From sequence record NC_031245.1: a stretch of DNA of 64,000 bases; one strand, 5' to 3'. The stretch's first letter is position 1. Every line of letters starts with the position of its first letter. The position numbers were made by a program, and so were the translations under genes. Below the pieces are notes generated by a model that did no database searches, had not been told where the DNA came from, and saw only the letters and a program-made list of their open reading frames with translations. Below are positions 4,457 to 25,128 of the stretch, one piece after another.

Positions 4457-4485
4457 GGCATCTACATTAGTAGATGCCTTTATTT
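4457..4485 (+). terminator. intrinsic terminator
   Basis: GGCATCTAC-ATTA-GTAGATGCC then TTTATTT. Confidence 0.75.
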
Positions 4486-4941: not shown

Positions 4942-5355
4942 ATGTTTAATGTAACAATTATTATAGGTCGGTTGACTAAGAATCCAAGTTATAAGTACTT
5001 TGAGAAAAGTAAAAGTCATCGTTGTACTTTCAAGGTAGCTGTACCTAAAGGATGGTTTAGTTCTGAAGCTGACTTTATTCCTATAGTTGTATGGGGTAAA
5101 GATGCTGTCAAGTGTAGAGACAACTTATCGAAAGGTAATTGGATAGCTCTACAAGGTAAGTTGAGTAGTCGGAATTATAAGAATGCTCAAAATATGACAG
5201 TCTATGTAGTCGAAGTCGAAGCTAAAGAAGTATTCTTTATTGATCGTGGCAAGTCCAAGGATGATAAAGGTCCAGACTTAAGTCAGCTACCATTTGCTAA
5301 CTTAGATACTAGTCAATTCAAGTTCGCTCTTGAAGAATCCTCAGACACCGAGTAA
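4942..5355 (+). CDS. ssb: single-stranded DNA-binding protein
   Basis: NVTIIIGRLTKNP, ADFIPIVVWG, LQGKLSSRNY, acidic tail. Confidence 0.92.
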   Translation: MFNVTIIIGRLTKNPSYKYFEKSKSHRCTFKVAVPKGWFSSEADFIPIVVWGKDAVKCRDNLSKGNWIALQGKLSSRNYKNAQNMTVYVVEVEAKEVFFIDRGKSKDDKGPDLSQLPFANLDTSQFKFALEESSDTE

Positions 5356-5378
5356 TTACATCATGAGGAGTGGAACTT

Positions 5379-6689
5379 ATGGATTTAGCTATAATCGGAA
5401 CAGGATTTGTTGGATTGACCTCAGCAGTAGTGTATGCTAGTAAAGGTCATAATGTTATAGGAGTAGATGTAGATCGATTTAAGGTCGACAACCTTAATCA
5501 AGGGATCTGCCTTATTCATGAGGATCAAGTTGGAACATTATTGTATGACGGACTGGAAAAAGGTAATTTAAGTTTTACTACAGACTTAGGAAAAGCTATC
5601 AATAGTTCAGATATCGTAATTATTACAGTAGGTACTCCACCTAGAAAGAACGGTAGTTCTGACCTATCATACTTATTCAAAGCTGTAGACGACGTAGCCA
5701 GTCTAGCTAAGAAGGACTTGATCCTCGTGATTAAGAGTACAGTACCAGTAGGTACTTGTAGAGAAGTAATGTCAATCGTCAAGAAGAGTCCACATAACAT
5801 CGAAGTGGTATCTAATCCAGAATTCTTGGCTGAAGGTACTGCTGTCGCAGATACCTTATCAATGAGTCGACTAGTCGTGGGGTCAGATAGTGAACGAGCA
5901 ATACAAGTTATTCTCGATCTTCATAAAGGTATGACGGATAATTACGTAGTAACTGACCTCGAATCTGCTGAGTTAATCAAGCATGCATCTAATGCATTCC
6001 TAGCTACTAAAATATCATTTATGAATGGTATTGCTAAGCTATGTGAATTCTACGGAGGTAATGTTGACGAGGTAGCTCGTGGGATGGGAATGGATAGTCG
6101 AATCGGTAATCAATTCTTAAAAGCTGGATTAGGATTCGGAGGTTCATGTTTCCCTAAGGATGTATTATCTTTACGTAATATGTCAGATGGGGTTAGCAAT
6201 AACCTGTATACATTGCTATCAGGAGTACTCTCTATCAATAACGAAAACAAGTATGATATAGCATTTAAGCTCGAAGAACTAATGAATAGTCAAGTAGCTG
6301 GACGTAAGGTAGCAGTCCTAGGCTTGTCATTCAAACCGAATACCAATGATATTCGAGAAGCTCCATCCTTAATTATTATAAACAGTCTTTTGGCATTAGG
6401 TGCCGATGTCCATGTCTATGATCCAGCAGTAACTGAAACTGAAATTCGTGATGGCTTAATGGCTAGTGGATACAGAGATCACATTAAATATAGATCTTCG
6501 ATCACTGATGTCCTAGCTGGAGCTGAAGGTGCAGTAATAGTAACAGAGTGGGATCAAATTAAGGAATTAGGAGCTAAAGCTTTTGTCAAGTTGATGAAAA
6601 CTCCTAACGTAGCTGATGGTCGTGGGGTACTCGATCCTAAAGAAGCTAGAGAACAAGGGATCAATCTTTACTCTATAGGTAGAAATTAA
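5379..6689 (+). CDS. ugd: UDP-glucose 6-dehydrogenase
   Basis: GTGFVG Rossmann motif, SNPEFLAEG, IKHASNAFLATKISF, catalytic GFGGSCFPKD, LGLSFKPNTNDIREAP; ATG 5379 fits GAGGAG RBS. Confidence 0.96.
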   Translation: MDLAIIGTGFVGLTSAVVYASKGHNVIGVDVDRFKVDNLNQGICLIHEDQVGTLLYDGLEKGNLSFTTDLGKAINSSDIVIITVGTPPRKNGSSDLSYLFKAVDDVASLAKKDLILVIKSTVPVGTCREVMSIVKKSPHNIEVVSNPEFLAEGTAVADTLSMSRLVVGSDSERAIQVILDLHKGMTDNYVVTDLESAELIKHASNAFLATKISFMNGIAKLCEFYGGNVDEVARGMGMDSRIGNQFLKAGLGFGGSCFPKDVLSLRNMSDGVSNNLYTLLSGVLSINNENKYDIAFKLEELMNSQVAGRKVAVLGLSFKPNTNDIREAPSLIIINSLLALGADVHVYDPAVTETEIRDGLMASGYRDHIKYRSSITDVLAGAEGAVIVTEWDQIKELGAKAFVKLMKTPNVADGRGVLDPKEAREQGINLYSIGRN

Positions 6690-6810
6690 TTAACTAATAC
6701 CAACTTTATAGGGTAATTCATGAGTACTGAACTATCACTTCAGGCTTTATAATTACCAGAAATTACAAGAACTGGTCAACATAAACATTAGGGGGATACA
6801 TCATAAGACA

Positions 6811-7503
6811 ATGGCAACTAGATACTGTAAAAGATGCAACAAAGAGTTAAAACCTACCCAAAAGAAGTACTGCAGTAACTCGTGCAGTGCTAAGGATCGA
6901 GTTATAAGTAAAGAAACTCGTGAGAAAATGAATCAATCAAAAAGAGGTAAGAAGGCTAGTGCTGAAACTCGTGCCAAAATGAGTAGATCTAGAAAAGGTA
7001 AGCCTAAGAGTGATAAACATAAAGCTAGTATAGCTGAAGCTCTTAAAGGTAATACTAACGGTACTGGCAAGAAGGGTATCAAGTTAAGTAAAGAGTCCAG
7101 GTTGCGGATTAGTAAAGCTATCAGCGGAGAAAATCATCCTATGTATGGTAAGTCTCTTAAAGAATCTACCAAGAAGAAATTGAGTGAGGCTAATAGAAGA
7201 AGAGAGAATGATATTGACTTCTACTTCAAGACACTGTTTACAAGTCCATATACTCCTCAGTATCGAATTGATGCACTTAAACACTATGGTCATGTATGTG
7301 AGAATTGCGGAGTGACAGACGTTATCCTAGAGGTTCATCATTTGGATCATGATAGAAGTAATAACGATATCAGTAATCTCTGCGTATTGTGCAGGATATG
7401 TCATCATAAAATTGCACATAAATACGGTAAAATCAAGATTAACACTCAATTTATCAGTCGCATAATTAATAAAAGGGGAGAGATAAACCATGCAAGTACG
7501 TAA
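6811..7503 (+). CDS. free-standing HNH homing endonuclease with NUMOD3-type repeats
   Basis: N-terminal CxxC..YCSxxC, basic repeats (SAETRAKMS, ENHPMYGKS), HNH core CENC..EVHHLDHDRSNNDISNLCVLCRICH. Confidence 0.9.
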   Translation: MATRYCKRCNKELKPTQKKYCSNSCSAKDRVISKETREKMNQSKRGKKASAETRAKMSRSRKGKPKSDKHKASIAEALKGNTNGTGKKGIKLSKESRLRISKAISGENHPMYGKSLKESTKKKLSEANRRRENDIDFYFKTLFTSPYTPQYRIDALKHYGHVCENCGVTDVILEVHHLDHDRSNNDISNLCVLCRICHHKIAHKYGKIKINTQFISRIINKRGEINHAST

Positions 7504-8374
7504 AGCTATTATTCCAGCAGCTGGATTAGGTACTAGATTCCTTCCAGCTACAAAAGCTCAGCCTAAAGAAATGTTATCCTTGATCGATCGACCTGTTATT
7601 GAATATATAGTTAGGGAAATTGTTGAGTCTGGTATCACTGAAATCCTGATAATCACTGGACGTGACAAACGTTCCATTGAGAATCACTTCGACTCTAGTC
7701 CTGAATTAGAGCGTACATTAGAAGAACGAGGTAAACTGGAATTAGTCGAGGAGTTGCGTAAGATTTCAAGTATGGCTAAAATCTATTATACTCGTCAGAA
7801 AGAAGCTCTAGGATTAGGTCATGCAGTCCTTCAAGCTAAAGAGTTTGTCGGTAACGAACCATTTGCAGTATTACTCGGTGATGATATTATGCATTGTAAT
7901 GGTACTCCTTGTTTGAAGCAAATGCTGGATAGATTCGAATTGTTCGAGAATCCAATAATCGCTGCAGAAGAAGTGCCTGATCATATGGTATCTAGCTATG
8001 GTATATTTGCAACTGATGGTGATCCATTGCACGGAGCTCATCAAGTAGTCGATATGGTGGAAAAACCTTCACTGGAGGAAGCTCCATCCAATCTAGCAGT
8101 AATGGGTAGATACATTTTGACTCCAGATATCTTTCCTATATTGGAAACTATCCCTACTGGAGCAGGTGGAGAAATTCAACTAACTGATGCTATTAAAGAG
8201 TTGATACATTTCCGAGAAGTCTATGCTTACAAGTTTGAAGGTAAAAGATACGATGCTGGTAACAAAGTTGAATTTATCAAAGCTAGTATTGAACTAGGGC
8301 TAGAACGGAATGATATTGCTCCACTCCTAAAAGAGTATATCATTGAGTTAGGACTTAAATTATCTAAGGAGTGA
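7490..8374 (+). CDS. galU: UTP--glucose-1-phosphate uridylyltransferase
   Basis: KAIIPAAGLGTRFLPATKAQPKEML, EALGLGHAV, VEKP, GEIQLTDA. Confidence 0.97.
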   Translation: MQVRKAIIPAAGLGTRFLPATKAQPKEMLSLIDRPVIEYIVREIVESGITEILIITGRDKRSIENHFDSSPELERTLEERGKLELVEELRKISSMAKIYYTRQKEALGLGHAVLQAKEFVGNEPFAVLLGDDIMHCNGTPCLKQMLDRFELFENPIIAAEEVPDHMVSSYGIFATDGDPLHGAHQVVDMVEKPSLEEAPSNLAVMGRYILTPDIFPILETIPTGAGGEIQLTDAIKELIHFREVYAYKFEGKRYDAGNKVEFIKASIELGLERNDIAPLLKEYIIELGLKLSKE

Positions 8375-8378
8375 ATTT

Positions 8379-9563
8379 ATGAGGATATTGGTCACTATGC
8401 CAACCACTCATCATATGATTCCTACGCATCCTAGAGGTGGATTTGAAATTTCAGTAGCTCAAAGTGCTATTGCATTAAAAGAACTTGGACATGAAGTGAC
8501 GATTCTAGTTAACAAAGAAGGGTCGTTCACTCCTCCAGGGATAAAGCATTTGCAGTTCGGGAGGTCAATTAGAATACCTCCTAAGATATTCAAAGAGAAA
8601 TTCCTGGAGGACTACGATGTCATAGTTCATCATGCAGGAGTTCCTACGTACGAGAAAGACTCGTACCTCAAGTGGATCAATGACAAGAATCACCGACCTA
8701 AGAAACCATTCATCATAGTCTTTCATGATCCTCATATGTTAAGAGGGGATTCAAGTAAACCAAATAGTATGGAGAACTTTGACTCACCTCTTAATGAATT
8801 CAGACATATGGCTAACAGAGGATTAATAGTTGGAGGAGTAAGTAAGTCGCATACACAATGGATGGCTCAGTCCAAAGAATTAGGTTCAAATATGATGTAC
8901 CTCTATAATCCTACACTGGATTATGGATGGTCGGATCGAATAGTGACTAAACCTCGTCGTCTCATCATCGTTAGTCGGTATGCTACGTACAAGAACCTTA
9001 AAGTTTCAGTTAAAGCTGCAGGTGAGAGTGGTATACCAACTGACGTAATTATTAGTGGTATCTACGAGTCAGATAACGAATACCGTAATACTCCAGATAG
9101 AGAAGAGTCAACTAAGTCCTTCGAACTAAAGGTATTACCGTTATTTCGTAAGTATCCTAACTTGACATTGTATACTAATAAAACTAATCAATTTGTAATC
9201 GATAAGATGAAACATGCTGATTTGATGATATCTGCAAGTACAGGCGAATCCTTCGGTAGAATTTATGCCGAATCACTGTCAGTAGGTACTCCTCTACTAG
9301 TACCTGATTTCGAGATTAGTCGGGAGATCATCCGAGATTGTGGTGAATACTTTACATTCAGTGGTTCACGCAAATCAATGGTGAAAGAAATCCTGACCAA
9401 AATTGAATCAGCTTCATCTATCCCTAGAGACCGATGTCGTGAGTTATGGCACAACAATTATTCTCCAGTAAAAGTCGGACTAGCCTATGAAGAAGTAATA
9501 AATGCTTCAATCAATAATTGGGATAAAGGAGGAGTACTCCATGACATTTATAGTAACGTTTAG
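8379..9563 (+). CDS. GT4-like glycosyltransferase (GT-B fold)
   Basis: GGFE..LKELGHEVTIL N-terminus; ESFGRIYAESLSVGTP (EX7E motif). Confidence 0.88.
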   Translation: MRILVTMPTTHHMIPTHPRGGFEISVAQSAIALKELGHEVTILVNKEGSFTPPGIKHLQFGRSIRIPPKIFKEKFLEDYDVIVHHAGVPTYEKDSYLKWINDKNHRPKKPFIIVFHDPHMLRGDSSKPNSMENFDSPLNEFRHMANRGLIVGGVSKSHTQWMAQSKELGSNMMYLYNPTLDYGWSDRIVTKPRRLIIVSRYATYKNLKVSVKAAGESGIPTDVIISGIYESDNEYRNTPDREESTKSFELKVLPLFRKYPNLTLYTNKTNQFVIDKMKHADLMISASTGESFGRIYAESLSVGTPLLVPDFEISREIIRDCGEYFTFSGSRKSMVKEILTKIESASSIPRDRCRELWHNNYSPVKVGLAYEEVINASINNWDKGGVLHDIYSNV

Positions 9564-10092
9564 TTTGCTCATTCTTATCGTAGTTACACTTTATCTTCTA
9601 AGCAAGAATCGTAAATTGAATCAAATGGTATCACTGGATCATTTGACTAACACCTATAACAGACGATACCTCAATAAGTATAGAAAATATAAGGATCAAC
9701 TTCTCAGCGTACTCGTAATCGATATAGATCATTTCAAGTCGGTCAATGATACCTATGGTCATCCTGCTGGAGATCAGATACTATCTGAACTGGCTGGATT
9801 GTTGAAGAGAATAGTGAGAGAAGAGGACTCAGTAGTTCGAATAGGTGGCGAAGAATTCTTGGTGATTCTTAAGAATACCCCTATCGACATTGCTGAGTCC
9901 CTTGCCGTCCAAATTCTACACGCTATCGGTAACCATAGATTCACTTATAACGACAAAGAGATTAGGATTACTGTTAGTATAGGTGTATCAGAGTCCTACA
10001 CTGATATCGATAGAGCAATCAGTGAAGCAGACCTCAATCTGTACCACGCTAAAGAGTCTGGTAGAAATCAAATCAGAGTACACTGTAATTGA
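9541..10092 (+). CDS. membrane-anchored diguanylate cyclase (GGDEF domain)
   Basis: N-terminal TM helix; DHLTNTYNRR, DIDHFKSVNDTYGHPAGD, RxxD I-site (REED), GGEEF, LYHAKESGRN; ATG 9541 after AAGGAGGAG. Confidence 0.95.
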   Translation: MTFIVTFSLLILIVVTLYLLSKNRKLNQMVSLDHLTNTYNRRYLNKYRKYKDQLLSVLVIDIDHFKSVNDTYGHPAGDQILSELAGLLKRIVREEDSVVRIGGEEFLVILKNTPIDIAESLAVQILHAIGNHRFTYNDKEIRITVSIGVSESYTDIDRAISEADLNLYHAKESGRNQIRVHCN

Positions 10093-10110
10093 AGTTCTCA
10101 AACGTCTATA
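10082..10110 (+). promoter_or_regulatory. phage-specific bipartite promoter motif
   Basis: ACTGTAAT-N10-AAACGTCTATA-CTTG-TGAAG. Confidence 0.75.
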
Positions 10111-10141
10111 CTTGTGAAGACATCGAAGGAGGATTACTAAT

Positions 10142-11209
10142 ATGGGAATTTATTACGTAGCTCGACATAAGTACCATGTGGATGCGATGTATCCTATTTG
10201 GGAAGGTACTGGTGGAGAGTGGATATTTGTACATCGAGAAGTTCACGGTTATAAAGGACTGGAACATTCTAAGAAGAAGTTCTCCGATCTTACTGAAAAG
10301 GATCTGGTAATAGCTAACTGTCCACTGCCTGAAGCATCCTCAGCTAAGTACAAGTTTGTCAGATTAGAGCTAATGCAACATAGTCCAGGTCAACGTACTA
10401 ATATGCGTGAACGTAAATGCGGTATGATTGATTACGGAATTGTGACAACTGACTCTAACTGGGACTTGGACTACGATCTATCACCTACGTACAAGCGTAT
10501 GCGTGATGAAGGTCGTATCTTCCAAGCAGGTGCGTGGTTCAAGAAGTACTACCTTGATAGAATGGAATCCAAGTCTGATGGCAATACAATTCTCCTAGCT
10601 CCAGCTTCATCAAATACTGCAGGAGGATTCTTGAATGTAGTTGGTGAACAAATTATTGAGAAGTTGTTATCTGAAGGGTACAAAGTCATCCTGATGCCTC
10701 ATGAACTTGACGTCTATAACTTACCTGGACGTGGAGTAATCGAGAGACTACGAGAAAGAATGGCTAATGGTGAACTCGAAGGACTAGAGCTACTAGACAG
10801 CAAGAATACTGGTATCGATAAGATCGAATATGCATTCACTAAATCCGATATATGTATCTCGGACTTCTCAGGTACGTCTTATGAGTTTGCGTATCTAAAT
10901 AAACCAGTTATCCATTTAAAGAATACATCAAAAGATAGGTGGAATCCTAAGTATAAACATGGTAACTACCACCATACAGTAGGTCCACTTGTGGATTTCG
11001 AGAAATGTAACTTCCTACCTACAGTTCAGTTTGCTATGACTGCTCCTGAAGAATTTATCCAAGTATCTAATGAAGAGTGGGATAGATTAGAAGCACTTCA
11101 CGATACAGTAGGATTAAGGGAAGTGGATCCGATCACACCTTCAATCAAGATTATCTTAGACTGCTATGACAGATTGCAACAAGGTAATCTACCTAAGAAG
11201 GATTATTAA
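10142..11209 (+). CDS. TagF-like (CDP-glycerol glycerophosphotransferase family) phosphotransferase
   Basis: TILLAPAS, VILMPHE, SDICISDFSGTSYEFAYLNKPVI match family motifs ILYAPTWR / LHP / DILITDYSS..FD..LxKP. Confidence 0.75.
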   Translation: MGIYYVARHKYHVDAMYPIWEGTGGEWIFVHREVHGYKGLEHSKKKFSDLTEKDLVIANCPLPEASSAKYKFVRLELMQHSPGQRTNMRERKCGMIDYGIVTTDSNWDLDYDLSPTYKRMRDEGRIFQAGAWFKKYYLDRMESKSDGNTILLAPASSNTAGGFLNVVGEQIIEKLLSEGYKVILMPHELDVYNLPGRGVIERLRERMANGELEGLELLDSKNTGIDKIEYAFTKSDICISDFSGTSYEFAYLNKPVIHLKNTSKDRWNPKYKHGNYHHTVGPLVDFEKCNFLPTVQFAMTAPEEFIQVSNEEWDRLEALHDTVGLREVDPITPSIKIILDCYDRLQQGNLPKKDY

Positions 11210-11215
11210 TTAGAA

Positions 11216-11244
11216 GCTGTATTAAGGTGTCATAGACGTTTATA
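11216..11244 (+). promoter_or_regulatory. phage-specific bipartite promoter motif
   Basis: GCTGTATT-N10-AGACGTTTATA. Confidence 0.8.
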
Positions 11245-11276
11245 GTCTTGAGGTTGTTAAACGAAGGAGGATACTT

Positions 11277-12428
11277 ATGAAAGTCGGAATTATCAACAAT
11301 ATGAATGTTCCAAAAGGTGGAACAGCTACTTATTTCAGAAACTATTTAATCCCATTGCTACTACATGCTGGAGCAGAGGTGACTTTCATTTCTTACAAGG
11401 GACTAGGGGATTACTGGAACGATAAACTTCCAGAAGACGTCAAAGTCCTGAACGTTAGTCATGAAAACTTTGATGAGCACATCGCTGAATTAAATGGATT
11501 AGACGTTATCCACACTGTAATCTTCCATTCTTATGTTGGTAAGAAAGGTGAACATATTGAACTATGGGACGATTTAACTAAGTTAAATGTACCTTTAGTA
11601 ACAACTGTCCATGCAGTTACACAATTAATGAGATGGTCTCATGACCCATCGGTACTAAACACTAAATCATTCTTAGCTCACCCTAACTTAGCTAAAGTTA
11701 TTCAGTTCCGTTATGGATATTACGACTTGCTGATGGGTAAATTTGCTAAGAAATATAAACCTGAATTCAAGTTACCTAACCGTGAGGATTACATAGTACA
11801 TCATCCATACGTAGGGTACGTGGATCGTAGTAACTTAATCCCTTGGGAAGAACGTCCAAATAACATTAGTTATGCAGGTAGATTCTCTGGAGCTAAACGA
11901 GGATACGTACTAATGGATTCATACGAATACATTAAGTCATTCGACAAAATGGTAGTTGCTACAAACTACGACGACTGTTCGCACTGGGATCGTATGAAAC
12001 TCAATACACTTATTGAGCAAGTAGGTGACAAGCTTGACTTGATCAAGGAGTTCGAACCTACTGATGTTCCTAAAATTGCTAATAAGGCTAAGTTCGTAGC
12101 ATTCCCAGTAGCTTGGGAAGATATTGAATTCCCTAACGAATGGATGTACCAAGAAATGGTATCATGCGGAGTGATTCCTATCACTACGGATAAGATGATC
12201 AAGCGTGTACCTGATGAGCTTAAGGACGTACTCGTATTAACTCACGCTCCTACAACTAAGCCAGTTGACTATGACGCTATCGTAGGTCAGTATTCTCAAG
12301 AGCAATTAAAAGAGATGTCTGATAAATTAGTGGACTATGCTAATCGCAACTGGCATGATATCGACTTAGCTTCTAAGCACCTAGTTGGTGTTTACGAACA
12401 AGCTATTGATAAAGGAGTGACCAAATAA
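11277..12428 (+). CDS. GT-B glycosyltransferase, phage DNA alpha-glucosyltransferase-like
   Basis: MKVGII..GGTATY, SYAGRFSGAKRG, EWMYQEMVSCGVIPI. Confidence 0.65.
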   Translation: MKVGIINNMNVPKGGTATYFRNYLIPLLLHAGAEVTFISYKGLGDYWNDKLPEDVKVLNVSHENFDEHIAELNGLDVIHTVIFHSYVGKKGEHIELWDDLTKLNVPLVTTVHAVTQLMRWSHDPSVLNTKSFLAHPNLAKVIQFRYGYYDLLMGKFAKKYKPEFKLPNREDYIVHHPYVGYVDRSNLIPWEERPNNISYAGRFSGAKRGYVLMDSYEYIKSFDKMVVATNYDDCSHWDRMKLNTLIEQVGDKLDLIKEFEPTDVPKIANKAKFVAFPVAWEDIEFPNEWMYQEMVSCGVIPITTDKMIKRVPDELKDVLVLTHAPTTKPVDYDAIVGQYSQEQLKEMSDKLVDYANRNWHDIDLASKHLVGVYEQAIDKGVTK

Positions 12429-13570
12429 TGAGAATCGGATTCTTAACTTTCCATAATGATTACTCTTCCAACAAAGTTGGAGGAGTAGTTTCTGGACCAC
12501 TTTACATGGTACAGAACTTACGTCAAGTAATTGGTGCTGAAGTAGACTTCTTAGTAGTTGCAGATTCTACTAAGAGAGGGAAAATAAGAAATAAAGCATA
12601 TGAGGAAGATGTTAGTTCATTCCTCGGATTCTTTGAAGGTACTAAGGATCACGAATCTGACGTAGAGCTACTCAATTCTTACGACCTACTCATGTTCATG
12701 ACTCCAGGTAAAACGTATGAGAAGTTCAAAGAAGAGAAAGTAGGTCAGTATAAGAAGGTTCTTGATAAGCTAACAGTTCCATTTGGATTCATAGTTAATG
12801 AAGAACGTGACCGTGATATGTATCTGTATTATACAGAGTTCACGGATCATCCTGGATGCAAGTACATTCTTTACAATTCTGAAGATATGGCTAAGGATTT
12901 CGAGGACTTCAATCAAGGTGGTAAGGTGGTAGCTGAGTTCCAGTTTATGACTCCACTCGAACCTCTAAATAAGATTCTTGAGAAAGCTAGCAATAAAACT
13001 TCCTCAGTAATCAATACAGGTCGTTGGGTTAATCGTAAGCGTATCGTGGAGTACGTAGAGCTTGCTCCTAAGTTCGCTGAAGTAGGAATTCAACCTTACT
13101 TAGCAGGAGCTAAACAGAATCCATTCTACTCTAAACAAGTAGACGAGATGCTAGAAACTCAGTACTTCCAAGATAAAACTTACCAAGATTACTTAACTTA
13201 TGTAGGAGCCTACAAACCTACTAAAGAAGAATTGGATGGACTGCTTGATGATAAGATGTTCCATTACAATTTCGTATTCCTACGTACTAAACGCAAGATG
13301 TATAATCGACTTGAGATAGCTACGATGGAAGCATTCAATAGAGGATGTCTACCAATCGTATGTTCAGAGACTTCACCTGACTGGGTTGAAGGAGCATTGA
13401 GCTTAAGTCGGGATCAACTCGAAGAGATTCCTTCTATAGTAGCAGGTATCTCCGATGCAGAAAGAATTGATAGACTTACTATATTCTACAAGTCTATTCG
13501 AGATAACGTCGAAGCTAAGTATAAAGATATCTTTAATAACTTGTTCGAGAGCTTAGGTATTAATAAATAA
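12428..13570 (+). CDS. GT-B glycosyltransferase, T4 AGT-like
   Basis: LLNSYDLLMF, YKKVLDKL, TGRWVNRK, RLEIATMEAFNRGCLPIV parallel T4 AGT motifs as recalled. Confidence 0.65.
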   Translation: MRIGFLTFHNDYSSNKVGGVVSGPLYMVQNLRQVIGAEVDFLVVADSTKRGKIRNKAYEEDVSSFLGFFEGTKDHESDVELLNSYDLLMFMTPGKTYEKFKEEKVGQYKKVLDKLTVPFGFIVNEERDRDMYLYYTEFTDHPGCKYILYNSEDMAKDFEDFNQGGKVVAEFQFMTPLEPLNKILEKASNKTSSVINTGRWVNRKRIVEYVELAPKFAEVGIQPYLAGAKQNPFYSKQVDEMLETQYFQDKTYQDYLTYVGAYKPTKEELDGLLDDKMFHYNFVFLRTKRKMYNRLEIATMEAFNRGCLPIVCSETSPDWVEGALSLSRDQLEEIPSIVAGISDAERIDRLTIFYKSIRDNVEAKYKDIFNNLFESLGINK

Positions 13571-13574
13571 GGGT

Positions 13575-13976
13575 GTGACTCAATTGACCAGACTATCAAG
13601 AAATAACAGCGAGACACGAGAAATGATCAAGTCCTTGTCAACATTGACAGGACTTGACCCTAAGGCTATTGAAACTGTATTAGTTGCACAAGAATTATAC
13701 ATTCAGCATCAGGTGTATTTGAAATACAAAGCTAATCCTGAAGAACCACCTGAGATTGAATTGCCTTACTTGGGGTCACTCAAGATGTTCCCAATCAATT
13801 ATAAGAACCGTAGTGATGTAACAGACAATGCTGCTGCAAGAGTAAAGTTCTACCCTGAGAATCAATTTAAGCGTAGGTTACGTAAATCGATGTATCAGGA
13901 GAAGAACTTCTTGATAGAGCATTCACTCGAATCCTTCAAGGATCATTTTGTCCAGAAATTCAAATCACTCATTTAA
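13575..13976 (+). CDS. HU/IHF-like DNA-binding protein
   Basis: MIKSLSTLTGLDPKAIETVL..EIELPYLGSLK pattern. Confidence 0.55.
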   Translation: MTQLTRLSRNNSETREMIKSLSTLTGLDPKAIETVLVAQELYIQHQVYLKYKANPEEPPEIELPYLGSLKMFPINYKNRSDVTDNAAARVKFYPENQFKRRLRKSMYQEKNFLIEHSLESFKDHFVQKFKSLI

Positions 13977-13989
13977 GGAGCTATCGTTT

Positions 13990-15420
13990 ATGTCTATAGT
14001 TAGAATGTATGATATACGAGGTATTTATGGTAAGGAGTTAACTGATGACTACGCCTATAACTTAGGTATTCGCCTAGTTAACTACCTTAATTCTGTATCA
14101 CAAAGTCCGACACTAGAAGTATTAGTTGGGTACGATGCACGTCGCAGTAGTCCAGCTCTGCATGATAAATTGGTAGAAGCTATTAGTAAGGCAGGAGCTA
14201 ACGTAGTCTCTGTAGGTATGACTACATCAGGAGTTATCTCTACTCTTGATAAAATGGAGAAACCTGACGCTTCGGTTATGATTACTGCTAGCCATAATCC
14301 TCCTGAATATAATGGATTTAAGATAATTGTTAATGGTCAAGCTCTCTATGGAGACCTATTAGCAGAAGTTGCTAATTACTCAGATATAGTTTTCTCAGGA
14401 GTAGATAGAGGATCAATCGGTAGCTACCCTGAGCTCATCAATAACTTGTACGTACCTGCTATCGTACGTGAATTCAAAAATAGACAGTCTGAAATCGATA
14501 TAATCAATACTTTGGAGTTAGCTATTGACTGTGCTAACGGCTCTGCAGGACCAGTACTTCAAGATGTACTCGACCGACTGGGTCTCAATATAGAGCTTAC
14601 CCTTAAGGAACCTGACGGGTCATTTCCAGTTCATCCACCAGATCCTAGTAAAGAGGATAACTGGGTTCATATTAAATCCCATTACCTAGATACTAAAATG
14701 CTGTTCATGATTGATGGTGATGGTGATCGTGTAGGTGTCATGACTAATGAAGGGACTTTGCTAAAAGGAGATAAAGTACTTTCTATCATAGCTGAGGCAA
14801 GCTCCTCACGTGCAATGGACAATACGATTCTCCTTGATGTTAAGTCCTCCGAGCTAGTTCGTGAGCATATTAAGTCATTAGGCTATCGTGTTAGGTACCA
14901 TCAAACAGGTCATTCCTTGATCAAGAAGTCAATGAATGGTGACAAATTGATAGCAATGGCTGGAGAAGAGTCAGGTCATCTCTATATTAGAGATGAGTTC
15001 TTTGGAGTGGATGATGCAGTCTATAACCTCCTAAGATTCCTATTTGATTCAGTTAAGTTAGGTGCTCATGCTAATCTGGAGTCCTACCTAAACTCAAGGA
15101 TGCCACGAACTTATACTCTTAGTCTTAAGTTTAATGTTTCAGATAACTTAAAGCCTAAGGTAATGGAGAGAGTTGCTCAAAAGGTAGTAGACTACGCTGA
15201 AAGTCTAGCAGGTGAAGTTATAACGATTGATGGAGTTAGAGCTAACTTCCATGAAGGGTGGTTCATCTTACGTCAATCAAATACCGAACCTTATATTGGA
15301 GCTAACATTGAGACTTATGAAGAGGATAAACTAGGTGATATCCGAAAGGTTCTATCAGATCTAGTAACTGAAGCTATTGCCAAGGAGGAAGAATTAAGTG
15401 GTCCAGTTAAATCCAAGTAA
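13990..15420 (+). CDS. phosphoglucomutase/phosphomannomutase
   Basis: YDIRG, ITASHNPPEYNGFK phosphoserine loop, DGDGDR metal loop, GEESGH, FILRQSNTEP; ATG 13990. Confidence 0.95.
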   Translation: MSIVRMYDIRGIYGKELTDDYAYNLGIRLVNYLNSVSQSPTLEVLVGYDARRSSPALHDKLVEAISKAGANVVSVGMTTSGVISTLDKMEKPDASVMITASHNPPEYNGFKIIVNGQALYGDLLAEVANYSDIVFSGVDRGSIGSYPELINNLYVPAIVREFKNRQSEIDIINTLELAIDCANGSAGPVLQDVLDRLGLNIELTLKEPDGSFPVHPPDPSKEDNWVHIKSHYLDTKMLFMIDGDGDRVGVMTNEGTLLKGDKVLSIIAEASSSRAMDNTILLDVKSSELVREHIKSLGYRVRYHQTGHSLIKKSMNGDKLIAMAGEESGHLYIRDEFFGVDDAVYNLLRFLFDSVKLGAHANLESYLNSRMPRTYTLSLKFNVSDNLKPKVMERVAQKVVDYAESLAGEVITIDGVRANFHEGWFILRQSNTEPYIGANIETYEEDKLGDIRKVLSDLVTEAIAKEEELSGPVKSK

Positions 15421-15712
15421 TTTTAATGAAGTTGTTGAGTCAGGGAAAGTCCTAGCAGTAAAATTCGGAGCACCATGGTGCGGTACTTGTAAGTCACTTG
15501 AAGCTCAATTAGATCAAATCATCGAGTCTGATAAGTACCAAGTTGCTGAAGTAAATGTAGAAGAGTCTGCAGATATTGCTGCTCAATACGGAATTATGAG
15601 TATTCCAGCATTACTATTTTTCAAGGATGGTCAGAAAGTGGATGAAGCATCCTTCGTAGGATTTCGTCCAGCTGAGTACATTCAGGAGACTCTTGACTCT
15701 CTATCCAAGTAA
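15398..15712 (+). CDS. trxA: thioredoxin
   Basis: FGAPWCGTCK, YGIMSIPALLFFKDG. Confidence 0.92.
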   Translation: MVQLNPSNFNEVVESGKVLAVKFGAPWCGTCKSLEAQLDQIIESDKYQVAEVNVEESADIAAQYGIMSIPALLFFKDGQKVDEASFVGFRPAEYIQETLDSLSK

Positions 15713-15717
15713 GCCAG

Positions 15718-15754
15718 ATGACCTAGGTAATTATACCTAGGTCATTTTTATTTT
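15718..15754 (+). terminator. intrinsic terminator
   Basis: 12-bp stem ATGACCTAGGTA/TACCTAGGTCAT then TTTTATTTT. Confidence 0.85.
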
Positions 15755-15756
15755 AA

Positions 15757-15785
15757 GCTCGAATCAACCTCCTCGAACGTTTATA
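15757..15785 (+). promoter_or_regulatory. phage-specific bipartite promoter motif
   Basis: GCTCGAAT-N10-GAACGTTTATA. Confidence 0.8.
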
Positions 15786-15844
15786 TTGTTGAGGTGGTGA
15801 TCGAGTTGATCTACATTGAGAAACGTTAAATATGTTGGAGGTAG

Positions 15845-15873
15845 GCTCTAATTAACGAGTTGAAACGTTTATA
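15845..15873 (+). promoter_or_regulatory. phage-specific bipartite promoter motif
   Basis: GCTCTAAT-N10-AAACGTTTATA. Confidence 0.8.
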
Positions 15874-15927
15874 CTGGTGAATGGTGTTGAAGCGTATGAC
15901 ACGTTCGATCAGAACGGAGGGATTGTG

Positions 15928-16635
15928 TTGAGTCGAGTTGGGTACATCTATAAAATAAGCAACAGTGTAGACTCAATGGTGTATATTGGAAGTACAGTGA
16001 AAGATGTAGAGACAAGAATGTACAAAGGAGCTTATTGCCATGCGGGATTAGCTCGTAGAGGTGATAAAAGACCTCTCTATATAGCTATGAGAAATTTAGG
16101 TATTGACAATTTCAAAATCGAGGTATTAGAGGAATTTGAATATGAAGATCCTAAAGAACTTAGAGCTAGAGAGCGAGACATCATTCAGGAGTATGTGGAT
16201 AAATTAGGAGCAGGTAAACTGTATAACATTTACAAAGAGGGATTTACTCTAGGATTCCATACAGAAGAATCACGTAGGAAGTGCAAGGAAGCCATTAATA
16301 CTCCTGAAGTTTTAGATAAGATCAAGAATACACAGTATAGGAGGTACGGATCTTACGGATTTCATACAGCTAAGTCAATTAAAAAGATGAGGATGTCCAA
16401 ATCTTGGTTTGTAGAATATGAAGGTCAAATCTTCATAGGACTTAGACCTCTAGAGTCGTACCTAAAAGATCAAGGGTACGTATGTTCTCGTAAGACCCTT
16501 ACCAATATAATTAATAATAGAGTGGATAAGCTGACTCCTCGACATCGAGGCATGATCGGTAAAGTTCGAATACTTACTGAGCAGGAGAAACTCGACTATA
16601 TTGAGAAGTTAGAGAAGGAGAGTGGTAATGCATGA
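15928..16635 (+). CDS. free-standing GIY-YIG homing endonuclease
   Basis: GYIYKI..VYIGST, GIDNFKIEVLE, catalytic-type R and E; TTG 15928 after GGAGG. Confidence 0.88.
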   Translation: MSRVGYIYKISNSVDSMVYIGSTVKDVETRMYKGAYCHAGLARRGDKRPLYIAMRNLGIDNFKIEVLEEFEYEDPKELRARERDIIQEYVDKLGAGKLYNIYKEGFTLGFHTEESRRKCKEAINTPEVLDKIKNTQYRRYGSYGFHTAKSIKKMRMSKSWFVEYEGQIFIGLRPLESYLKDQGYVCSRKTLTNIINNRVDKLTPRHRGMIGKVRILTEQEKLDYIEKLEKESGNA

Positions 16636-24760: not shown

Positions 24761-25114
24761 ATGGAGAAGAATAGAAGAGATGCATTTAGACTGGAGAACT
24801 TACAGATTTCTTGTAAGTACGGCAACTGTGCTGAAGGAATTACTAACCTAGTAGACATCAGTGCAACTGGTGCTAGACTAGCTGGCAAGATAGGTGATGT
24901 AGGGAGTCCAATAACTATAACTTTCAGAATTATGGATAAAGCATTCATTAGAACTGGAACTATAGTTTGGGTGGATAATCAGTACACTGCAATGAAATTC
25001 TCTAAGACTACTCCTAGAGAAGAATCCGAACTGCTACGTAATATCTTCCAAGAAGATATCAAAAGGAAGTATGAGTCAGAAAATAATCAAGAAAAGTTAG
25101 CTCAAAACGAGTAA
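24761..25114 (+). CDS. stand-alone PilZ-domain c-di-GMP receptor
   Basis: RDAFR (RxxxR) and DISATG (DxSxxG) followed by a beta-barrel pattern (GTIVWV..AMKF). Confidence 0.85.
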   Translation: MEKNRRDAFRLENLQISCKYGNCAEGITNLVDISATGARLAGKIGDVGSPITITFRIMDKAFIRTGTIVWVDNQYTAMKFSKTTPREESELLRNIFQEDIKRKYESENNQEKLAQNE

Positions 25115-25128
25115 GCTAAACGTCTACA
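25100..25128 (+). promoter_or_regulatory. phage-specific promoter motif (variant)
   Basis: GCTCAAAA-N10-AAACGTCTACA. Confidence 0.6.

Follow-up and report, generated by a model that had tools for sequence, protein, structure and literature searches.

Adjacent glycosyltransferase genes of Bacillus phage SP-15, related to T4 DNA alpha-glucosyltransferase, as candidates for sugar attachment to DNA

Which enzymes put the sugars on the DNA of Bacillus phage SP-15, among the most heavily decorated natural DNAs known, is the question raised by two adjacent glycosyltransferase (GT) genes, SP15_152 and SP15_153 (products gp152 and gp153), that lie in a 64,000-nucleotide stretch of sequence record NC_031245.1; we call the whole of this stretch the window and give all SP-15 positions in it. 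We know of no enzyme that has been identified, after 50 years, as attaching these sugars. The window is SP-15 DNA: its positions 8000-16000 correspond at 100% identity to 132000-140000 of KT624200.1, and a window position is the KT624200.1 position minus 124000.

About half of the thymine of SP-15 is exchanged for 5-(4′,5′-dihydroxypentyl)uracil (DHPU), whose side chain bears glucose on one hydroxyl and glucuronolactone, joined through a phosphodiester, on the other (PMC5977210). The genome paper (Kropinski et al. 2018, PMC5977210) proposed genes 146-155 as the makers of these decorations and traced the cluster to bacterial wall-polymer genes; gp149 and gp152 were entered simply as glycosyl transferases, and gp153 is not among the enzymes listed. 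The same paper states as unknown which hydroxyl bears which group, and likewise whether sugar addition precedes or follows polymerization.

We find that gp152 and gp153 are anciently diverged from each other and belong to a phage-restricted superfamily whose nearest characterized member is T4 DNA alpha-glucosyltransferase (AGT), and we regard them as the best candidates for the enzymes putting sugars on SP-15 DNA. It is reasonably probable that both glycosylate the dihydroxypentyl-uracil side chain, dividing positions or steps between them. A role for these genes in adding glucose and phosphoglucuronolactone had already been put forward at the level of the cluster, as had gp152 as a glycosyl transferase; the genome paper gives no family assignment, whereas here the two proteins are phage-specific and AGT-related, with relatives in other thymidine-hypermodifying phages. 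What is new is that gp153 is a glycosyltransferase nearest to T4 AGT and gp152 its remote sister, both with the AGT motif spacing; that the family is phage-restricted and, in the contexts available, found in replication or hypermodification neighborhoods, with a second lineage carrying the pair; and that a promoter-like motif precedes the pair.

gp152 and gp153 relative to T4 DNA alpha-glucosyltransferase

The pair and its translation signals are as follows.

11277-12428, + strand: SP15_152 (gp152), 383 amino acids, GT-B glycosyltransferase of a very small phage family; 'glycosyl transferase' in GenBank
12428-13570, + strand: SP15_153 (gp153), 380 amino acids, GT-B glycosyltransferase nearest to T4 AGT among solved structures; 'hypothetical protein' in GenBank
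12426-12430, + strand: TAATG overlap of the gp152 stop and gp153 start, one base being common to both (translational coupling)
11264-11270, + strand: Shine-Dalgarno sequence AAGGAGG of gp152, called strong

The initial annotation had described two adjacent proteins of about 380 amino acids, overlapping at stop and start and having the GT-B fold, and these points hold: both open reading frames (ORFs) and the TAATG junction are present, and all top Foldseek matches of the gp153 model, like the top matches of the gp152 model, are GT-B proteins. The genes are real, with homologues at 59-85% identity for gp152 and 62-72% for gp153, and the loci L006/L007 (L006 is a metagenomic relative of SP-15) have the same overlap geometry.

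The suggestion that gp153 is AGT-like was borne out by three approaches, since T4 AGT comes first among solved structures in Foldseek, in a HMMER profile search of PDB, and in hhalign. The gp153 model, built with AlphaFold2 on close relatives, has two Rossmann-like domains (predicted local distance difference test [pLDDT] 81.8, predicted template-modelling score [pTM] 0.84). Searched against PDB, it matches AGT at ranks 1-8 (E 5e-12 to 4e-10, TM 0.62-0.69), and the best GT4 enzyme, BshA, follows after AGT (E 2e-9, TM 0.54-0.57). A HMMER profile of 100 gp153-family members, run against all PDB sequences, likewise places AGT in the top three positions (E 1e-10) with a match covering residues 3-390 of ~400; GtfA (Gtf1) is next, through its C-terminal domain only, followed by ordinary GT4s. 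Comparison of the gp153-family profile with other proteins by hhalign gave the following.

T4 AGT: probability 96.3%, E 2e-9, 321 columns, both domains
SP-15 GT4 gp149: 92.5%, E 5e-7, 188 columns, N-terminal domain only
T4 beta-glucosyltransferase: 89.6%, E 2e-6, 193 columns, N-terminal domain only
TagF-like gp151: no alignment

In BFVD, a database of viral structures, the gp153 model recovers the entry already present for gp153 (TM 0.92), and the next matches include proteins named DNA alpha-glucosyltransferase from cyanophage S-TIM5 and an uncultured siphovirus. gp153 has a weak PHROG match to phrog_2888, alpha-glucosyltransferase (E 1e-4), and no Pfam or NCBIfam match.

These relationships are resolved only by the 100-sequence family profile. 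A shallow seven-sequence gp153 profile reaches only 59% against AGT in hhalign, phmmer of gp152 and gp153 against PDB sequences returned nothing relevant, and T4 AGT has an identity of only 14-16% and no pairwise phmmer match to any of 108 family members. T4 AGT (PF11440; PDB 1XV5, 1Y6F, 1Y8Z, 1YA6) nonetheless shares with gp153 the GT-B fold, the best structural and profile match, a phage-encoded origin in a DNA-modification setting, and four motifs in the same order. The two differ in acceptor, which is 5-hydroxymethylcytosine for AGT and presumably a diol side chain on uracil in SP-15. Judged from profiles and the model, gp153 is a distant relative that would resemble AGT in its working, but it belongs to a separate, uncurated family.

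The position of gp152 is less direct. The metagenomic relative and contig L013 each have one homologue, the former at 85% identity; Streptococcus phage vB_SagM-GXN1 has two in tandem (29-35%), and two further proteins, one of them from Listeria phage LIS04, are at ~60%. When a set of 5.8 billion proteins was searched with the profile for additional relatives, only the same four proteins came back. gp152 has no Pfam, PHROG, or NCBIfam match, BLASTP between gp152 and gp153 is not significant, and the narrow profiles of the two score 0.2% against each other. The gp153-family profile, in turn, aligns with the gp152 family over 320 columns (hhalign 97.9%, E 3e-13) and finds gp152 by hmmsearch (E 3e-19 in a small local database). 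The gp152 profile scores 1.6% against AGT and found nothing among PDB sequences, such that AGT and gp152 are linked only through the gp153 family. The best Foldseek matches of the gp152 model are the retaining GT4 enzymes ManT, MshA, and BshA (best E 4.6e-10), and AGT stands at rank 14 (E 1.4e-6); the model is the weaker of the two because it was built from a four-sequence alignment. The description of gp152 as AGT-like thus stands for the family profile and the shared motifs, but structurally GT4 enzymes come first and there is no direct profile link to AGT.

In a maximum-likelihood tree, the gp152 type (SH-aLRT support 100%) and the gp153 type (97%) are separate deep clades, and a recent tandem duplication is rejected on this ground. 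'Tandem pair', as the genes had been called, does not hold in the sense of a recent duplication.

Both proteins share motifs with AGT. All of the peptide motifs quoted in the initial annotation are present in the gp152 and gp153 translations, and the AGT motifs it gave are truly in T4 AGT (protein taken from NC_000866). The putative nucleotide-sugar motifs are as follows.

T4 AGT: G-R204-x4-K209; E306-x4-E311, then G-x-I-P
gp153: G198-R199-x4-K204; E296-x4-E301
gp152: G201-R202-x4-K207; E288-x4-E293

Both gp152 and gp153 have GR-x4-K and E-x4-E(x3-5)G-x-(I/L)P in the AGT order and spacing, and all gp152-type and gp153-type proteins examined have the same spacing; two canonical GT4s from the same loci, SP-15 gp149 and a GT4 of the uncultured phage contig L003, have E-x7-E. 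Across 100 gp153-family members the most conserved positions are G19 (95%), D86 (94%), E126 (88%), R199 (91%), K204 (97%), G227 (95%), R294 (89%), and E301 (95%). At the equivalent positions, the Arg, Lys, and Glu of GT4-type enzymes bind the donor's diphosphate, ribose, and sugar. Both partners, and both copies in GXN1 and in L013, keep all of the motif residues, and from these residues both gp152 and gp153 look catalytically competent; by homology, they should also be retaining enzymes.

GT4 enzymes (BshA, MshA, PimA, Mycobacterium hassiacum ManT; Glycos_transf_1) share the fold and the same Arg/Lys/Glu nucleotide-sugar apparatus; structurally, they head the matches of the gp152 model and make up a second tier for gp153. 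They differ in that gp152 and gp153 match neither Glycos_transf_1 nor Glyco_transf_4 in Pfam, have E-x4-E and not E-x7-E, and do not lie in a wall or polysaccharide operon. Glycos_transf_1-type models touch 7-9 of 100 gp153-family members, the most distant ones.

Relatives of the pair and their gene contexts

The gp153 family is genuine but rare. A word-indexed search of the 5.8 billion proteins returned six relatives, and 1.84 billion cluster representatives, searched exhaustively with a profile, yielded 103 of the gp153 type at E <= 1e-3; these 103 representatives, at 50% clustering and uncurated, are the family as we define it. gp153 is a core member, with a full-length profile match and all of the conserved residues. 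No relative was found among 185,579 species genomes of bacteria and archaea by a pattern scan, which reaches close relatives only; a genome search with a narrow alignment added a single viral contig and gave no match in bacterial genomes, and tblastn with other family members found no cultured phage beyond SP-15 and LIS04.

The closest contexts are those of the Thornevirus relatives, in which the gp152/gp153 pair recurs. The metagenomic SP-15 relative has the same gene order as SP-15 minus the HNH and GGDEF genes, and LIS04 retains the dehydrogenase, GalU, gp151, gp152, gp153, and gp154 genes, without gp149 and the adjacent mutase. From the lack of gp149 and of an adjacent phosphomannomutase, LIS04 seems to use fewer enzymes to make a related DNA modification. 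We also observed that positions 12115-13278 of the LIS04 sequence (OQ999172.1, our L008) hold the gp153 homologue (62% identity) as an intact ORF, with no coding sequence annotated in GenBank.

The pair also occurs in a second lineage. In L013, from a metagenomic phage, its order is reversed, and the genes run PolA with an intein, P-loop kinase, a 195-amino-acid protein, gp153 type, gp152 type, HD 5′-deoxynucleotidase, SbcCD, and ligase. GXN1 (L009) has an L013-like layout, with a 1871-amino-acid UDG-PolA-intein replicase and the two gp152-type copies, which suggests that GXN1 is another phage with glycosylated thymidine. UDG-fused PolA enzymes are the defining feature of the 'SP15-like' replicases, which belong to phages with glycosylated thymidine (PMC13697223), and in Carin-5 and YerA41 GT genes likewise adjoin the polymerase (PMC12686479). 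The UDG-PolA-intein gene lies at L009 17-5632, with its L013 counterpart at 1-1668, three or four genes upstream of the GT pair.

Other contexts hold a gp153-type gene with no gp152 partner in the adjacent sequence (L003, L011, L014, L016, L018, and L019). The richest is L003, a 230-kb ENA contig from an uncultured jumbo phage for which no cultured relative was found. Its positions 5312-13352 begin with a 5-hydroxymethyldeoxyuridine (5-hmdU) DNA kinase, a thymidylate-synthase-like protein, SpoVG, and dCMP deaminase, and continue with a TAGT-like 470-amino-acid protein, a gp153-type GT whose start overlaps the previous stop, a GT4, and UDP-galactopyranose mutase. This cluster looks like a multi-sugar thymidine hypermodification pathway, possibly one containing galactofuranose. 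In L018, a gp153-type gene accompanies a GATase, an amidoligase, a phosphatase, and PF18724, which we take to be ADDT, the amino-acid:DNA transferase family. The gene types of L018 are those described for thymidine-hypermodification clusters (PMC8989533). L016 (7955-11634) encodes a 634-amino-acid protein in which a gp153-type GT is fused to an unknown 250-amino-acid C-terminal domain and whose gene runs into the start of a family-A DNA polymerase gene. The same element encodes an integrase and a resolvase. In L019 the gp153-type gene is beside helicase, SbcC, and ligase genes, and in L011 and L014 HD nucleotidase and sugar-tailoring enzymes are found beside a topoisomerase. Every informative context of the relatives is thus one of DNA replication or base modification, and no wall or polysaccharide operon is among the contexts obtained.

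The SP-15 operon and its promoter-like element

In SP-15 the pair is embedded in a unit with the order SSB, UDP-glucose dehydrogenase, HNH, GalU, gp149, GGDEF, gp151, gp152, gp153, gp154, phosphoglucomutase, and thioredoxin. The only intrinsic terminators that bracket the region on this strand are at 4457 and 15716.

5379-6689, + strand: UDP-glucose 6-dehydrogenase (GenBank annotation; NCBIfam TuaD-like, E 1.8e-129, below the model's curated cut-off)
6811-7503, + strand: HNH/NUMOD3 homing endonuclease SP15_147 (GenBank annotation)
7490-8374, + strand: GalU, UTP-glucose-1-phosphate uridylyltransferase (annotation; NCBIfam match above cut-off)
8379-9563, + strand: SP15_149, canonical GT4 with E-x7-E (Pfam Glycos_transf_1, E 4e-10)
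9502-10092: SP15_150, GGDEF diguanylate cyclase with an N-terminal hydrophobic segment, within the sugar cluster
10142-11209, + strand: SP15_151, weakly TagF-like, candidate phospho-sugar transferase (Pfam PF04464, E 1e-4, just under cut-off)
13575-13976, + strand: SP15_154, small basic protein, isoelectric point (pI) 9.4 (ORF; no Pfam, PHROG, or NCBIfam match)
13990-15420, + strand: SP15_155, phosphogluco/phosphomannomutase, supplying Glc-1-P (annotation; all four Pfam PGM_PMM domains)
15716-15747, + strand: intrinsic terminator after the thioredoxin gene, a 14-bp stem followed by a T-run, closing the transcription unit (GenBank annotation)
~24762-25115: SP15_170, PilZ-domain protein, ~15 kb downstream of the GGDEF gene

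The dehydrogenase and GalU genes are kept beside the GT pair in L006/L007 and LIS04. gp149 is present in SP-15 and L006 and absent from LIS04; gp151 and gp154 are restricted to the Thornevirus loci, and in all three of these (SP-15, L006, and LIS04) gp154 follows the gp153 homologue, being absent elsewhere. gp154 could assist the pathway as an accessory or DNA-binding protein. We considered gp151 as a third member of the superfamily and rejected it, as hhalign finds no similarity to the gp153-family profile; conversely, PF04464 has no match to gp152 or gp153. The homing endonuclease gene SP15_147 is inserted between the dehydrogenase and GalU genes, overlaps the GalU start, and is absent there in L006/L007 and LIS04. 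The GGDEF gene also looks like an insertion, because it is absent from the same cluster in L006/L007 and LIS04.

The initial annotation had given the pair its own promoter. Scanning the 67-nt gap upstream of gp152 for the sigma-70 consensus returned no promoter, but the gap does hold a copy of a recurrent, conserved phage motif.

11215-11246, + strand: promoter-like element AGCT-N17-ACGTTTATAGT, 30 nt upstream of the gp152 ATG
15 intergenic copies, + strand, RGCT-N17-ACGTYTAYAST then YKTGARG, with ACGT starting at 10102, 11236, 15865, 21923, 25120, 26290, 36678, 37888, 40651, 46442, 47808, 51203, 56429, 56537, and 57140

The core ACGTYTAYAST has 15 exact copies in the window, all on the + strand and outside long ORFs; most lie 18-45 nt before an ORF start, and nearly all have GCT 17 nt upstream. 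A degenerate search with TARACGTYTATAST, allowing one mismatch or fewer, gave 14 matches against ~0.5 expected by chance, and none of 100 shuffles reached 14. The element before gp152 is conserved in the metagenomic relative L006, a second copy precedes gp151 (10102), and in LIS04 the gap corresponding to that before gp152 is only 12 nt. With a motif recurring far above chance and conserved in an SP-15 relative, it is plausible, from the sequence, that gp152 and gp153 have a promoter of their own, of a phage-specific class. The SP-15 genome paper makes no mention of promoters (PMC5977210).

Sugar transfer to DNA and the alternatives

From identity, fold, motifs, relatedness, and gene contexts we infer donor, acceptor, timing, and division of labor as follows. 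gp152 and gp153 would be co-transcribed and translationally coupled in an operon that makes UDP-glucose and UDP-glucuronate through phosphoglucomutase, GalU, and UDP-glucose dehydrogenase. The dihydroxypentyl-dUTP precursor, a nucleotide that has also been made synthetically (PMC11550810), would first be built into DNA, and the two enzymes would then move hexose from UDP-sugars to the 5-(4′,5′-dihydroxypentyl)uracil side chain, each serving a different position or step; the acceptor would be this side chain and not hydroxymethylcytosine. Different hydroxyls or successive steps seem more likely than different sequence contexts, which the initial annotation had also offered. gp153 is the best candidate for an alpha-glucosyltransferase acting directly on the DNA-borne hydroxyl, because it is more AGT-like, is more widespread, and recurs with varied tailoring enzymes. 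gp152 may perform a second transfer, either a UDP-glucuronate (GlcA) step with gp151 toward the phosphoglucuronate arm or a second glucosylation.

For that arm, TagF-like gp151 could attach GlcA-1-phosphate in one step, which would make one GT superfluous, or two in SP-15. Alternatively, a hydroxyl could be phosphorylated, with GlcA then transferred by a GT-B enzyme. An analogy for two enzymes splitting the work on one modified base is offered by the T4 alpha- and beta-glucosyltransferases and by the sequential glucosylation of T2 and T6, in which two DNA-directed GT-B enzymes use a common UDP-sugar supply (PMC13216743). The T4 genes are unlinked and belong to different families, whereas those of SP-15 are adjacent and overlapping and belong to two related clades.

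Several observations weigh against DNA glycosylation by this pair. Neither gp152 nor gp153 matches the AGT family PF11440 even at E <= 1, and none of 100 gp153-family members does so at E <= 0.01 (T4 AGT, as a positive control, scores 862 bits); the PHROG alpha-glucosyltransferase family is touched by only two of 100. The tree does not place AGT as sister of either clade, nor does it settle the order of the two clades relative to AGT and GT4. The gp152 model is of low confidence (pLDDT 64), and its best GT4 matches act on small molecules or polysaccharides. gp152 and gp153 are acidic (pI 5.2 and 5.9), although AGT is acidic too (6.1), and net charge therefore carries no hint of DNA binding. 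DHPU has two known sugar attachments, against three GT-B proteins and a TagF-like protein in SP-15; the transferases outnumber the known sugars, and therefore at least one assignment is wrong or the chemistry is incomplete. Finally, the synthesis of DHPU takes place on the nucleotide (Walker & Mandel 1978, cited in PMC5977210), with the timing of sugar addition stated as unknown (PMC5977210).

This last point leads to an alternative that we consider unlikely, namely that gp152 and gp153 glycosylate free dihydroxypentyl-dUMP or -dUTP before polymerization. It would fit the synthesis of DHPU as a nucleoside triphosphate and the absence of adjacent DHPU residues from SP-15 DNA, which has been ascribed to interference during replication (PMC5977210), and specialized UDG-PolA replicases may have evolved for bulky or charged thymine modifications (PMC12686479). 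AGT, the nearest characterized relative, acts instead on duplex DNA after replication, as its PDB complexes with DNA illustrate. Family members also sit with the 5-hmdU DNA kinase and PF18724 ADDT, enzymes shown to act on polymeric DNA.

It is more improbable again that the two proteins are a single obligate two-subunit enzyme of the GtfA-GtfB kind, carrying out one transfer with one subunit catalyzing and the other binding the acceptor. In favor of this are the translational coupling, the second lineage in which the pair occurs, the place of GtfA as next-best PDB profile match after AGT, and the fact that only one glucose per DHPU is documented. Both proteins and the family members examined keep the full GR-x4-K and E-x4-E set, however, which argues against an arrangement with one dead subunit; gp153-type genes stand without an adjacent gp152 partner in several loci, and the GXN1 locus has its two gp152-type copies and no gp153 homologue.

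We give slightly less credence still to the modification of host wall polymers, namely teichoic or teichuronic acid, or of some other glycan of the host, in takeover or superinfection exclusion, a reading in line with the published derivation of the cluster from wall-polymer biosynthesis. The dehydrogenase of the cluster is most like TuaD, gp151 resembles TagF, a resemblance to teichuronic acid gene sets has been pointed out (PMC5977210), and the gp153-family profile also matches TarM and GtfA. These matches have weaker E-values and AGT ranks above both; moreover, the searches made returned no bacterial homologues of gp152 or gp153, and the informative contexts all concern DNA. Glycosylation of phage or host proteins, such as virion proteins, is very improbable: protein O-glycosyltransferases of the GT-B/GT4-like type (GtfA, SdgB) are among the weaker matches, but AGT is the top match for gp153 and the module around the two genes is one of replication and nucleotide sugars, not of structural proteins.

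Glycosylation of the DHPU side chain in DNA, with the work divided between gp152 and gp153, is accordingly the reading we prefer. A broader version, which we put forward tentatively and which may well not hold in full, is that the two types found a hitherto unrecognized, phage-only branch of DNA glycosyltransferases acting on linker-bearing thymidine replacements and not on hydroxymethylcytosine. The gp153 type would be the general first-sugar enzyme in phages with SP15-like replicases and in other thymidine-hypermodifying phages, and the gp152 type would build the phosphodiester-linked glucuronate arm, for example by adding GlcA to a phosphorylated hydroxyl.

For SP-15, the candidates for sugar attachment are narrowed to a coupled pair, one member of which is related to the structurally understood T4 AGT, and this offers a concrete way into the pathway that can be put to the test. 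Beyond SP-15, the gp153 family may mark new glycosylated-thymidine DNAs in uncultured phages, and it may yield enzymes that tag bases other than cytosine, as the T4 glucosyltransferases do for 5-hydroxymethylcytosine.

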